NCBI GenBank assembly: GCA_051294375.1
Contig: CM119265.1
Location: 13,632,124-13,696,123 of the forward strand
Source: Paraspadella gotoi
Lineage: Eukaryota; Animalia; Chaetognatha
DNA length: 64,000 bases
Reading direction: 5' to 3'
A program made the position numbers and the translations under genes. How positions within the stretch are numbered: the first letter of the stretch is position 1; the number at the start of each line of letters is the position of its first letter. The notes below the pieces were generated by a model, which searched no databases, was not told the DNA's origin, and saw only the letters and a program-made list of their open reading frames with translations. Below are positions 7,430 to 43,300 of the stretch, piece after piece.

Positions 7430-8087
7430 TGAAGAGACAGTGACGATTATTATTTATGTGTAGTGATAGAACCGTTCATATAAAGCAGTCCCTGAGCTTC
7501 GGATCAGGCTGTAACACCGAGTTAAAGGCGGGTTAAGCGCCCCGTCCCTCTTAACTGCCAGGCGACCACCGGGCTAGAACCCCAGACCTTTGGTTGGGAG
7601 GCAAATGACTTGCCTCCGGCACCAATGGCTGCTGATGAACGGTTGGTGGATTTTAGTCCACCATACATCCCCCCCTCCCGTAGAGAGAAGTCTGTTGCGT
7701 CTCTTCAGTGAATTGTTGTTGTTGGTGGAAAGTTCATCACCAAGTTGAGGCATGTCGCCTGATGTGTTGTGGGTGGAAAGTGCATCGCCAGGTTGAGGCT
7801 AGTCGCCTGAAAGTGTGGTTGCTGTTGTGTTCGGAAGTCGGGCTCACCAATGAAGAGACAGTGATTTTATTATGTGTTAGTGATAGAACCGTTCAATATA
7901 AGCAGTCCCTGAGCTTCGGATCAGGCTGTAACACCGAGTTACAGGCGGGTTAAGCGCCCCGTCCCTCTTAACTGCCAGGCGACCACCGGGCTAGAACCCC
8001 GGACCTTTGGGTTGGGAGGCGAATGACTGCTCCAGGCGGGACACCAATGGCCGCTGATGAAGGGTTGGTGGATTTTAGTCCATCATA
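7430..8087 (-). mobile_element. Complete TRIM (miniature LTR retrotransposon), family A, tRNA-like sequence in LTRs (Helenus-like)
   Basis: Direct LTRs 7851-8087 and 7430-7665; TSD GAAT at 7426-7429 and 8088-8091; PBS TGGTGAGCCCGACTTCCGAACAC 1 nt after 5' LTR; PPT GGGAGGGGGGATG before 3' LTR; non-coding ~185-bp interior. Confidence 0.9.
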
Positions 8088-8094
8088 GAATTAA

Positions 8095-40300: not shown

Positions 40301-43300
40301 ACCTTTCCGTCCTTCCTCGGCGGAACGTTCTGTACGAAAGAGCCGATGAGATTTCCGGCGGGACGGTAGCTGCCGACGACGTAGCACTTTCCGTCAGGCG
40401 TCTTGGCTTTGCCGAACCCCGCCTCCGAGCTCGATTTCCACACGACCTGAGTGAAGTGACCTGTGAGAAAGTACGGACCGTCACGGGGCGGGGGAGGGGA
40501 TGAGAAGAGAGGAGGGGGGAGGAAAGAAAAGAAATACTTGACTTGTGGGTCGTTACCCAAGAGCAACTAGGAAAATATATTGTTGAGAATTTTTATGCGT
40601 TACTGAACTCTTTGTTCGGCGAAAAAGGATACTGGAAAATGGAAAATGTTCTCATTCGTTTTTTTTGTTGTTGTTGTTTTTTTGTTTTTTTTTTTTGTTT
40701 ACTTTGGTTCATTAAAAAAAACTTCACACATAATACAACAAAAAAAAAATTCGTAATTGATTAAAAGCCAAACAGAACAAAATTGTAACGCTTAGAGTTG
40801 CAACTCTTTGTGTACCTTTTCTGCTTGGCTACTTAAATGGCTAATTATACTCGGCAGTGCAGTGGTTTCGGCGATTTGGTAACTTTGGTTTTATAACGCG
40901 ATCGACGACGACGACGACGGGGACGGAGAACTATTGGCAAATCTCAATCGGACGTTGTCGGCAAAGAGACTCGAAGATCGTTTCGTGGAGAGCGAACCGG
41001 TTCTCCTTGTTGTGCAGAGTGACAAAAATACGGAAGGTCGCTAAATCGCGAACTAAGACTGAGTTGACGACCACCCGACAAACCAGAGTAAAAACATTGA
41101 AGTTCTTCGACCTCTATCGCTTTCTAGTTCTTTGTTTCGATTTATAAAACCGGCGAAGGTCTTGCTGTTTTATAAACAGCAATTTATGAAGAACTATTTG
41201 TTAACATGTCTGTAAGGGATAGCATATGCTATGTCATTATCTTGTAAGAGTGATGGAGGACTTAAACCTACACAGACTGTCCACTGTGTCCAGTGTCCAC
41301 AACAACATATAATAGTGAAGTGACCGAGAGGGTCGCCATGCCTCTCTGTGAGTGTGGATAGCCCCCACACTTAGTGTGCCCAGTGGGTCTGGGAGATCTT
41401 TTCGTCAGTTGCCTTAGTTGACAGAACTTCGCATCCGGCGGTGGGCTTGCTACCGGGGGTTTAACAGGCACGTCACTCTTTTTGCAAGGTATATTCCGAC
41501 CAGGGCTAGAACCCGAGATCATTGGGTTCGGAGATGAAGCGTTAGCCCAGTACGCTATTATGGCGCTGATGGAAGGAACAGTCGTATCCAACGGGTAGTG
41601 ATATTACATCACGACAATAGCTTATCTATTAATTGAATGGATAATTTTTACATTGGTAGTACCAATTTCGTATATCTGTACAAAAATCTTTGACTGACCA
41701 CTTAGCCAATATCGATCAAAAGTCAATTTTAGCTCTTTCATTAGACAAATTGCTTTCGAGCATAATTCAATGAGTGGAAAAGTCGGTACTGTGGCGGAAT
41801 ATTCACACCGCCTCACGTCCACCATACTTCAGCCAAATCCATTGGCTCAGAGGGGGAACACACCATCCTAGGCGTAGTGTTCCATCCACAGTCCTAACGA
41901 CTTCCCTCTGCATTGGCAAAGCGAGACCGTCCTAGGGTAACCGCGCCAGTGACTGGAGGCGTCACTGAGGGTCAGAAGCACCCAAAGCCAACAGTGAAGA
42001 TGCCCCATCCCAATGGGCATCACAGGCAACCCGGCTGTTGCCATAAGTGGCGAGCCCTACTATCGAACACGCAACCTTCTCAGGGTATGCTACGACAAAC
42101 GCTTATGCCCTGCTGACTTTGGGTACGCTACAACAAACGCCTATGCCCCTGGGATACGCTACGACAAACGCCTATGCCCCCACAACTCGTGCTCTCTCTC
42201 TCTCCCACTATGGTAACTGTCTTGTCAGACACCTCTCAGGCTTGAGGAACCTGAGTGATGTCTTGGCCCGGGGATCCTGTGGTGGTATGTTTACTAAGGC
42301 GGGCCAAAATTGAACACTTTTTATAACTTGTAATTCTCTCAAAAAAATTCCTTTTTTCCTTCTATTACTAAATCGATTTTTAATGCAACTTTTTGAATTA
42401 GTTCATTGGGTTGTTGCACTGAAGCTTTTAAATATTTATTAATATATAACAAATGAAAAAAAAAATTTTTAAAAAAATATAGAGCTTGAAAAGTTAAATG
42501 AAAGTTAGTACTACAATTTTTTAAAATTTTGACAAGAAATTGGTTAAAAACAGAAAAAACGTTAAAAAAATCATCATCATCATCATCATTGGTTGAATTT
42601 TATAGTTTTTTAAAATTTTTATCAATAAAACAACAAAATTTTTAAAATTTGTATTAATAACCTTTATATAACTTTTAAAGTTCTATCAGAATCCATTAAA
42701 AAAAATTGAAAAAATAAAAAAAAATTTTAGCTATATATAGTAATAAAATAATCTTTAAATGCTTCCGTGCGCTTATTAATAAGATAATTTTTTAAAATTA
42801 TTTTTATTTTCATATTCTCTAACAGTCACTTTATCATTATTTATTTGAGAGAACTTCTAGTTTTCGACCTGTTCCGGCCTAATGTTTACACCACCTCACG
42901 TCCACCATCCTTCAGCCAAATCCATTAGCTCAGAGGGGGAACACACCATCCCAGGCGTAGTGTTCCACAGTCCTAACGACTTCCCTCTGCGTTGGCAAAG
43001 CAAGACCGTCCTAGTGTAACCGCGCCAGTGACTGGAGGCGTCACTGAGGGTCGGAAGCCCCCAAAGACAACAGTGAGATGCCCCATCCCAATGGGTATCA
43101 CAGGCAACCCGGCTGTTGCCATAGTACATTAATAATGTCATTATCTGCCTCACCCGAAGCTAGAGTCCTCGGTTCTTTTCCGAAGTCGTGCACTCCGATT
43201 TCCGAGTACCACTGCGTTGTGGCGCCGTCGCCGTCGTAATCGGCGCCGTTCGAAGCCCAGCGCATCGCGATGTTCTCTCCGAGTTTAACGCCTTTCAGTT

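Follow-up and report, generated by a model that had tools for sequence, protein, structure and literature searches.

Why should a retrotransposon without any open reading frame (ORF) carry, right beside its primer-binding site (PBS), a second sequence complementary to the same primer tRNA? The question is raised by four miniature long terminal repeat (LTR) elements found in a stretch of 64,000 nucleotides from the chaetognath Paraspadella gotoi (contig CM119265.1, positions 13,632,124 to 13,696,123 of the forward strand), the whole of which is referred to below as the window. In each of these elements a 13-nt PBS resembling the complement of the 3' end of tRNA-Trp is separated by two or three nucleotides from a block that appears antisense to the T arm and variable loop of the same tRNA. 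The answer towards which we lean, with modest confidence, is a joint one: the second block would have originated by read-through of the reverse transcriptase (RT) into the primer and would have been retained as a second primer contact.

Four miniature elements sharing a two-block site

The motif TGGYGAGCCCKACT occurs exactly four times in the window, at 7849..7836, 27219..27206 and 36566..36553 on the minus strand and at 42048..42061 on the plus strand, against a chance expectation of 0.45 even when two mismatches are allowed. The neighbouring motif CGAACACGCAACC is exact at three of the four sites, the fourth, in family A, reading CGAACAC+AACA+GCAACC. A chance origin of the sites was rejected on these occurrence counts. 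All four had been located correctly in an earlier note on this DNA, and each begins 1 nt (family A) or 2 nt (families C and D) past a 5' LTR, the place expected of a PBS.

Each site belongs to a small element flanked by target-site duplications (TSDs). The family A element spans 7430..8087 on the minus strand (658 bp) and consists of a 5' LTR (8087..7851), an internal region (7850..7666) that includes a polypurine tract (PPT), GGGAGGGGGGGA, at 7679..7668, and a 3' LTR (7665..7430); it is flanked by ATTC at 8091..8088 and 7429..7426. Family C is represented by two copies. The first, C1, lies on the minus strand at 26746..27474 (729 bp), with its 5' LTR at 27474..27222, its 3' LTR at 26995..26746 and the TSD GTCT at 27478..27475 and 26745..26742. 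The second, C2, lies on the plus strand at 41790..43123 (1,334 bp), with LTRs at 41790..42045 and about 42876..43123 and the TSD GTAC at 41786..41789 and 43124..43127. The family D element occupies 36105..36864 on the minus strand (760 bp); its 3' LTR (36343..36105) is shorter than its 5' LTR (36864..36569) through deletions, and its TSD, GAAT, is found at 36868..36865 and 36104..36101. The A, C1 and D elements have no ORF.

The LTRs measure about 235-295 bp and the internal regions about 185-230 bp, that of C2 being longer. Owing to this extra AT-rich internal stretch C2 exceeds the size of about 1 kb given for terminal-repeat retrotransposons in miniature, or TRIMs, below which A, C1 and D remain. 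The 4-bp TSDs are perfect in all four elements. A PPT is clear in A, and C and D show only a short purine run, GGGGA, before the 3' LTR. No ORF of at least 130 amino acids was found inside the elements, and a tblastn search of the 64-kb window with 120 DUF7041 Gag proteins and pieces of pol (see below) returned nothing and hence no autonomous element. Possessing two LTRs, a short internal region, no ORF and a 4-bp TSD, the four elements are therefore non-coding, non-autonomous LTR retrotransposons of the TRIM type, and they belong to three families. Since their LTR pairs are 73-95% identical (A 90.5%, C1 95%, C2 92%, D 73.5% with gaps counted), no copy among the four is young.

Some side observations concern the same elements. 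The AT-rich stretch of C2 (about 42310..42860, about 550 bp) is not present in C1 and could be a nested insertion or a family variant. Two more partial or solo family A LTRs, 87-91% identical and without PBS, were found at 6793-6998 and 18611-18808; one lies 430 bp from the family A element in the same orientation and the other 10.7 kb off in the opposite orientation. Between the element and the nearer LTR lies an AT-rich inverted repeat at 7049-7194, resembling the hairpin of a miniature inverted-repeat transposable element, whose Rfam matches to miRNA precursors are weak and sub-threshold only.

tRNA-Trp as the probable target of both blocks

The identity of the tRNA was tested without recourse to the tRNA-Trp sequence given in the earlier note. 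The 15-mer GAAGGTTGCGTGTTC of the window (27187-27201) was scanned in metagenome contigs and 120 loci were returned. A predicted tRNA gene containing the 15-mer is present in 40 of these 120 loci, and 44 of the 45 such tRNAs are tRNA-Trp(CCA) of eukaryotic type. These data support the proposal that tRNA-Trp is the primer and that its complement comes in two parts, an agreement far beyond what chance would give.

The antisense of the tRNA genes, completed with CCA, was aligned to the elements, using locus L031 for the T loop TTCGAAT and locus L017 for TTCAAAT. In family A, the proximal PBS TGGTGAGCCCGAC (7837..7849, minus strand) is antisense to tRNA-Trp positions 76-64 with one mismatch, at position 70. 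It is followed by three nucleotides, TTC (7836..7834), which include a C opposite A58, and by the distal block CGAACAC-AACA-GCAACC (7817..7833), antisense to positions 57-51 and 50-45 with a 4-nt insertion between the two. The family D element has the same PBS, TGGTGAGCCCGAC (36554..36566, minus strand), with one mismatch and 2 nt (AG) past the LTR; its distal block TCGAACACGCAACC (36538..36551) is exactly antisense to positions 58-45 and lies 2 nt (TC) from the PBS. In C1, the PBS TGGTGAGCCCTAC (27207..27219, minus strand), also 2 nt (AG) past the LTR, has two mismatches to positions 76-64; beyond two nucleotides (TA, 27206..27205) the distal block TCGAACACGCAACCTTCT (27187..27204) is exactly antisense to positions 58-41 of a tRNA with a G57-type T loop. 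The PBS of C2, TGGCGAGCCCTAC (42048..42060, plus strand), has three mismatches, one of them private to this copy, and its distal block TCGAACACGCAACCTTCT (42063..42080) is again exactly antisense to positions 58-41. The block thus matches the tRNA-Trp genes at 14 of 14 positions in D and 18 of 18 in C1 and C2, and is split by 4 nt in A. On this alignment both blocks appear to target tRNA-Trp(CCA), the complement covering the T loop and variable loop as well as the T stem's 5' strand. The five nucleotides at tRNA positions 63-59 face two nucleotides in the elements, a net shortening of 3 nt that is the same in the three families, and the nucleotides between the blocks differ by family (TA, TC and, in A, TTC).

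Compared with the metagenome tRNA-Trp genes, which may not be those of the host, the PBS agrees at 12 of 13 positions in A and D, at 11 in C1 and at 10 in C2. The match of 13 nt with one mismatch that had been proposed holds for A and D and not for C1 and C2. All four copies have the position-70 mismatch, and none of the 47 recovered tRNA-Trp genes carries C70. Within a small, mostly non-host set of tRNAs, the PBS 13-mer is matched at 12 of 13 positions by tRNA-Trp and at 11 of 13 by a tRNA-Arg. As the elements have their TTCGA motif 3 nt too near the CCA end, no standard tRNA can match them without a break over more than about 13-14 nt. In the window itself, no tRNA gene was called by ARAGORN and no Rfam family was detected, nor did an Rfam scan with permissive settings reveal a partial tRNA in the PBS region of C1.

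Conservation of the module between families

Families C and D align with each other over the 3' half of the LTR (z = 19.7) and over the internal region (z = 5.4) relative to shuffled sequences and are, on these alignments, homologous families. Outside the module, no similarity of family A to C or D could be detected (z about 0); common to the three families are the 13-mer PBS, its mismatch at position 70, the spacing and the second block. The earlier description of the families as unrelated has to be abandoned for C and D and is kept for A, which shares the module only. The same spacing and the same PBS mismatch in A, C and D speak against convergence and point to a single origin of the module, be it by common descent, by derivation from related autonomous partners or by recombination.

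C1 and D are 54% identical overall, 62% in the 3' part of the LTR and 44% in the internal region. The spacer and PBS agree at 14 of 15 positions and the distal block at 14 of 14, versus 1 of 14 in the next 14 nt. Fully identical 14-column windows are restricted to the LTR end with the PBS and to the distal block, and a 14/14 match at this named place has a probability of about 0.001 at a per-site identity of 62%. Family A keeps the PBS, the mismatch, the 3-nt spacing and both halves of the block though nothing else aligns. The internal regions of TRIMs keep little beyond what is needed in cis, yet the block was kept, a pattern that argues for purifying selection on it while the ancestors of these copies were active. 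Such selection would have preserved the block in the lineages from which these TRIMs descend, while its surroundings diverged. That the distal segment is under selection had been suggested before, and its PBS-like conservation between diverged or unalignable families gives substance to the idea and fits an extended contact of the Ty1 type.

Other features of the C and D elements were recorded beside the module. A hairpin in U5, a short way upstream of the PBS, reads GATGCCC...GGGCATC in C (41999-42021, 26770-26792) and GATACCC...GGGTATC in D (36591-36612, 36129-36149), a compensatory change between the families keeping the pairing. A second U5 hairpin, of 7 bp (CAGTGAC-N7-GTCACTG), is the same in every C and D LTR (e.g. 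27298-27318, 36644-36664, 41947-41967). A 29-31-nt unit (GGGTACGCTACGACAAACGCCTATGCCC-like) stands in the C leader in two to three copies arranged in tandem (27090-27146 and 42120-42180), and D has a single related unit. The predicted consensus fold of the C/D leader has a hairpin, weak and with no covariation, between the PBS and the distal block, from which no conclusion is drawn.

Long tRNA-Trp antisense in autonomous relatives and other repeats

In the metagenome loci that are not tRNA genes, tRNA-Trp sequence including CCA adjoins the end of a repeat in PBS orientation. Contiguous antisense tRNA-Trp reaches 36 nt in L028, 50 nt in L116 (perfect, to an A57-type tRNA) and 68 nt, nearly the whole tRNA, in L035. 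L116 and L035 belong to the same repeat family, from metagenome project JAAUYA01, which is unrelated to the elements described next; their antisense stretches (3868..3819 and 1470..1403, respectively, both minus strand) come directly after the repeat end. An RT stop at position 26 was envisaged as the cause of the 50 nt in L116 and rejected, as the related L035 continues further and the differences beyond position 27 look like CpG decay. The ORF downstream in L116 has a NADAR domain and no retroelement domain.

In L028 the antisense is followed by a Gag-like ORF with 783 homologues at E <= 1e-5, carrying the Pfam domain DUF7041. Contigs were fetched for ten of the DUF7041 Gag homologues. Downstream of the DUF7041 Gag come RVT_1, RNase H, Integrase_H2C2 and rve, in the Ty3/Gypsy-type order, and the family of L134 and L135 has an uninterrupted pol product of 1033 amino acids. 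A tRNA-Trp PBS lies 10-110 nt upstream of gag in most of the DUF7041-Gag elements fetched, and its proximal part is exact to tRNA-Trp in these relatives. The extent of the antisense varies. It amounts to 12 nt in L133-L137, about 15 nt in L130 and L131, and 22 nt in L121, L128 and L141-L143, whereas L125-L127 and L132 have 13 nt plus a piece without the T-loop complement. In L129 it is 32 nt long, perfect and contiguous (TGGTGACCCCGACGTGATTCGAACACGCAACC), and ends at position 45 as in family D of the window. The 22-nt class ends one nucleotide before T54. A C in place of T opposite A58 is found in the 22-nt class, in L028, in L035 and in family A of the window.

No DNA similarity was detected between the window and any of the fetched loci, and the exact two-block motif had no match in viral contigs or in bacterial and archaeal genome contigs. 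The TRIMs of the window probably depend on a Ty3/Gypsy-type partner; the putative link to the DUF7041-Gag clade rests on the tRNA-Trp PBS with its extension and on the 4-bp TSDs. Such TSDs have been associated with Gypsy-mobilised animal TRIMs (Kojima 2024, PMC10886601). As a side observation, GAAGGTTGCGTGTTC also occurs in tRNA-like heads of apparent short interspersed elements (...GGAAGGTTGCGTGTTCGATTCCCGATGGTGTCA...) in L081, L084, L051 and L115, which are termite-associated metagenome contigs and in whose heads ARAGORN calls no tRNA.

Origin of the second block

The block is most likely what has been retained of a primer copy made by reverse transcription. In the ancestral element, plus-strand strong-stop synthesis would have continued past the 1-methyladenosine at position 58 (m1A58) and would have written a longer antisense copy of the tRNA into the leader, of which the second block would be what remains. 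The contiguous form of this read-through trait would be the one seen in the autonomous DUF7041-Gag Ty3/Gypsy-type elements that use tRNA-Trp. Reverse transcription of the primer as origin is suggested by four features: the stretches are antisense, they include CCA, as a copy of the mature primer should, they adjoin the PBS without a break, and their end points form a ladder, seen together with the base opposite A58. To our knowledge A58 is invariant in tRNA genes, and because of this a C opposite it is not a faithful copy of an unmodified base. RT is known to pass m1A with misincorporation, the mismatches in the m1A-A context being mostly not C in the template sense (PMC4787781). These data are compatible with the G in the template sense that is observed opposite A58 here.

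It had been argued that about 30 nt of complementarity could not be recopied from the primer. This argument is not supported, as the relatives carry contiguous antisense of 22-68 nt past position 58; copying from the primer is made the likeliest origin by the relatives in which 22, 32, 36, 50 and 68 nt run through this position. A further hint comes from the leader of family D, where the 18-nt stretch GCGCACCGTGCGCCCACG (36517..36534, minus strand), which follows the distal block, looks like antisense to the D arm of tRNA-Trp and to the 5' side of its acceptor (p about 0.007 versus shuffles). The same likeness gave no signal in A, C1, C2 or L129. The D leader is suggestive of a near-complete ancestral tRNA copy whose anticodon arm was later lost.

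A proposed second contact with the primer and its alternatives

Once in place, the block probably provides full-length tRNA-Trp with a second contact, to its T arm, a function proposed from predicted pairing and by analogy. Pairing of the PBS with positions 76-64 would open the acceptor stem and two T-stem pairs. With the 5' T-stem strand thus released, the tRNA could then pair with the distal block through this strand, the T loop and the variable loop. Such a contact would stabilise full-length tRNA-Trp on a short and imperfect PBS, like the boxes beside the 10-nt PBS of Ty1. Duplex energies were calculated on unmodified tRNA, modified bases being ignored. The predicted duplex involving both blocks has -43 to -53 kcal/mol, compared with -14 to -24 kcal/mol for the PBS 13-mer alone, -27 to -36 kcal/mol when the distal part is shuffled and -25.7 kcal/mol for the fold of the tRNA itself. 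The two blocks are predicted to pair around a small, asymmetric internal loop to which the tRNA contributes 5 nt and the element 2 nt. In HIV-1, 6 nt of PBS suffice for priming provided that contacts elsewhere make up for the rest (PMC7472051).

Several points weigh against read-through followed by retention as a contact. It would need a route by which a read-through tail is fixed downstream of the 5' PBS, and a cause for the common loss of positions 63-59. The modified bases in the target of the block (T54, pseudouridine 55, m1A58 and 7-methylguanosine 46) could weaken the predicted pairing. The PBS of all four copies departs at position 70 from each tRNA-Trp recovered from the metagenomes, and the block of family A is interrupted by 4 nt. 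The argument for selection involves no more than two to three independent lineages and four old copies. Finally, the autonomous relatives differ in their extension, and L133-L137, which look the most intact with gag and the 1033-aa pol, have 12 nt only; the extension is therefore no requirement in the DUF7041-Gag clade.

Some of these points are also what a neutral relic would predict, an explanation that we hold to be unlikely though well worth considering. The extent of complementarity varies freely among the relatives, from 12 to 68 nt, with deletions in differing places, which affect the T-loop complement in L125 and L132 and positions 63-59 in the window elements. The intact-looking L133-L137 manage without an extension, the family A block is interrupted, and the copies in L116 and L035 show decay at CpG sites. 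A mere relic is however difficult to reconcile with the identity of C and D at all 14 positions of the block (probability about 0.001) when 1 of the next 14 nt and 44% of the rest of the internal region agree, or with the retention of the module in family A, where nothing else is alignable. Moreover, the 2-3 nt between the blocks vary by family and both blocks are fixed.

Selection on the block could also have another object than primer capture. The block might let a strong-stop DNA that was read past A58 still pair with the minus strand during plus-strand transfer and be extended, and would then be a longer form of the lentiviral complementarity at the second RT-stop site; we regard both formulations as distinctly improbable. 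Lentiviruses conserve the complement of tRNA-Lys3 to one nucleotide before m5Um54, which was read as a rescue of read-through products (PMC8599865), and the 22-nt class of relatives stops exactly one nucleotide before position 54. Given the arrangement of the window elements, the last 5 nucleotides of an 18-nt strong-stop product would lack a partner, and the last 14-18 of a read-through product would be paired. Nevertheless, the scheme needs frequent read-through of m1A58 in the host, and an inherited plus-strand copy should restore positions 63-59, which are absent in all four copies.

The missing positions are given a role of their own by a further possibility, to which we attach little credence. 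The position-70 mismatch and the loss of 63-59 might weaken pairing with 18- and 22-nt 3' tRNA-derived fragments (3'-tRFs), while the distal block would favour the full-length tRNA only; pairing with such fragments of tRNA-Trp would, just as doubtfully, be reduced to 6+6 nt. PBS mismatches are common in active mouse endogenous retrovirus (ERV) families, where they were read as an escape from 3'-tRFs, and tRF3a blocks priming in a manner sensitive to mismatches (PMC7472051). By position numbering, the block (58-41) would lie almost wholly outside tRF3a (76-59) and tRF3b (76-55), and both the mismatch and the shortening are common to the three families. The scheme would, however, require the host to make a 3'-tRF-Trp or to use such a pathway, and the difference at position 70 may be simply a variant of the host tRNA-Trp. 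If true, this discrimination would be a natural answer, in an invertebrate TRIM, to the 'priming versus silencing' trade-off of mammalian ERVs.

A different primer, i.e. another host tRNA or a variant RNA ending ...GTCGGGCTCACCA with the distal block as the fossil of an earlier primer, is highly improbable: the absence of C70 from the 47 tRNA-Trp genes and the 11/13 match of tRNA-Arg would agree with it, but tRNA-Trp with one difference is the best match available, the relatives carry an exact tRNA-Trp PBS, and canonical tRNAs are limited to about 13-14 contiguous nt, TTCGA standing 3 nt too near the 3' end and the bases between the blocks varying by family.

Other features of the window

Host exons were recognised around the elements. 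Four PAN/Apple domains are encoded at 13595-14515 on the plus strand and a piece of a CAP domain at 34933-35328 on the minus strand. An exon at 49176-49595, also on the minus strand, encodes a paired-like homeodomain's C-terminal end. Among 5.8 billion proteins the PAN ORF had no match at 1e-20, and at 1e-3 its best match was 27% identical, in Phytophthora; with no close relative of this ORF, the host lineage seems poorly sampled. Related minisatellites of 22-23 nt (CATCAATAATT.../ATGAATGACTATCATCG...) are found at the distant positions 8997-9253 and 61932-62391, and the window contains many long (TC)n/(GA)n runs (19805-19938, 35916-35983, 43580-43684).

Comparison with known systems

Extended primer contacts and complementarity beyond 18 nt are well known. 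In the literature searched there was no report of 32-68-nt contiguous tRNA-Trp antisense in invertebrate LTR elements, nor of the two-block form in TRIMs with a 14-18-nt complement of T arm and variable loop directly past a 13-nt PBS, and searches on the PBS strings led to no retrotransposon paper. On the reading proposed here, genomes would hold a readable record of RT passing m1A58, in the form of a ladder of 18, 22 and 32 to 68 nt with a recurrent C opposite A58, and in retrotransposons of the most reduced kind part of a primer copy could persist as a further contact with the primer. PBS finders limited to a complement of the 3' end of at most 18-20 nt will overlook or mis-score such sites. 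The common module may help to tie TRIM families to their autonomous partners, and it offers a concrete pattern for a comparative-genomic look at the trade-off between priming and 3'-tRF silencing.

The elements of the window resemble the animal TRIMs PbTRIM of ants and Helenus of Hymenoptera, bivalves and vertebrates in their size below 1 kb, their two LTRs and PBS, the lack of an ORF and the 4-bp TSDs (PMC3532108, PMC10886601). tRNA-Trp is used by some hymenopteran families of Helenus and by Gypsy-32_NVi, and Helenus-2_SyJa has a 13-nt tRNA-Trp PBS. PbTRIM, in contrast, is primed by tRNA-Leu (PMC3532108), and the PBS reported for PbTRIM and Helenus is of about 9-19 nt, without a second block (PMC3532108, PMC10886601). 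The defining mark of Helenus is a tRNA-like sequence in the LTR, and TRIMp3 elements have there a Pol III promoter derived from a tRNA or from 5S. No tRNA-like LTR was found in the window elements, which thus do not qualify as Helenus/TRIMp3; for family A the assignment was rejected, as its LTR contains no tRNA according to ARAGORN and gives no 5S or tRNA match in Rfam at E up to 10. All that the family A LTRs show is a T-arm-like hairpin, CCGGGGTTCTAGCCCGG, at 8002-7986, 7585-7569 and 6912-6896 on the minus strand. No similarity to the published Helenus and Ajax sequences was found beyond one 11-mer, CTTAACCCGCC, which is common to the family A LTR and nemertean Ajax LTRs, probably by chance.

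Complementarity past 18 nt is shared with the 22-nt PBS of lentiviruses and of mouse MusD/ETn. In lentiviruses it is conserved to one nucleotide before m5Um54, interpreted as a second RT-stop site (PMC8599865). All full-length MusD elements examined are complementary to position 22, with an A-to-C mismatch at m1A (bioRxiv 10.1101/2025.05.12.650695). Exactly this form is displayed by L121, L128 and L141. The 22-nt PBS is contiguous and ends at position 55, whereas the window elements lack the complement of 63-59, and so fall outside this class, and reach position 45 or 41; some relatives extend further, to 32-68 nt.

A second contact with the T-psi-C arm supports initiation in Ty3, with its bipartite PBS, in HIV-1, through the primer activation signal, and in Rous sarcoma virus (RSV) (PMC5371799, PMC1865047). 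The second segment of Ty3 lies about 4.8 kb away in U3, unlike the block of the window elements, which stands immediately downstream of the PBS. In HIV-1 and RSV the contact is upstream, in U5, and about 7-8 nt long; that of the window elements is twice as long.

The closest likeness is with the bipartite PBS of Ty1, in which 10 nt and adjacent complementary segments pair with the primer across a small internal loop (PMC5371799, PMC3592414). Both systems have a short PBS for the acceptor end, further cis segments just downstream and a contact with the T arm (PMC5371799, PMC3592414), the extra segment of the window elements being the 14-18 nt antisense to positions 58-45 or 58-41, 2 nt past the PBS. 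They differ in that Ty1 is a Ty1/copia element using tRNAiMet, with boxes on the T and D arms, whereas here a single 14-18-nt tRNA-Trp block is carried by non-autonomous elements. The Ty1 boxes are reportedly several, of 6-7 nt each. The contact function was demonstrated in Ty1 and is here proposed from sequence and predicted duplexes. With this proposal, the idea of extended primer contact, as known from Ty1, Ty3, HIV-1 and MusD, would be widened to tRNA-Trp-primed invertebrate elements.

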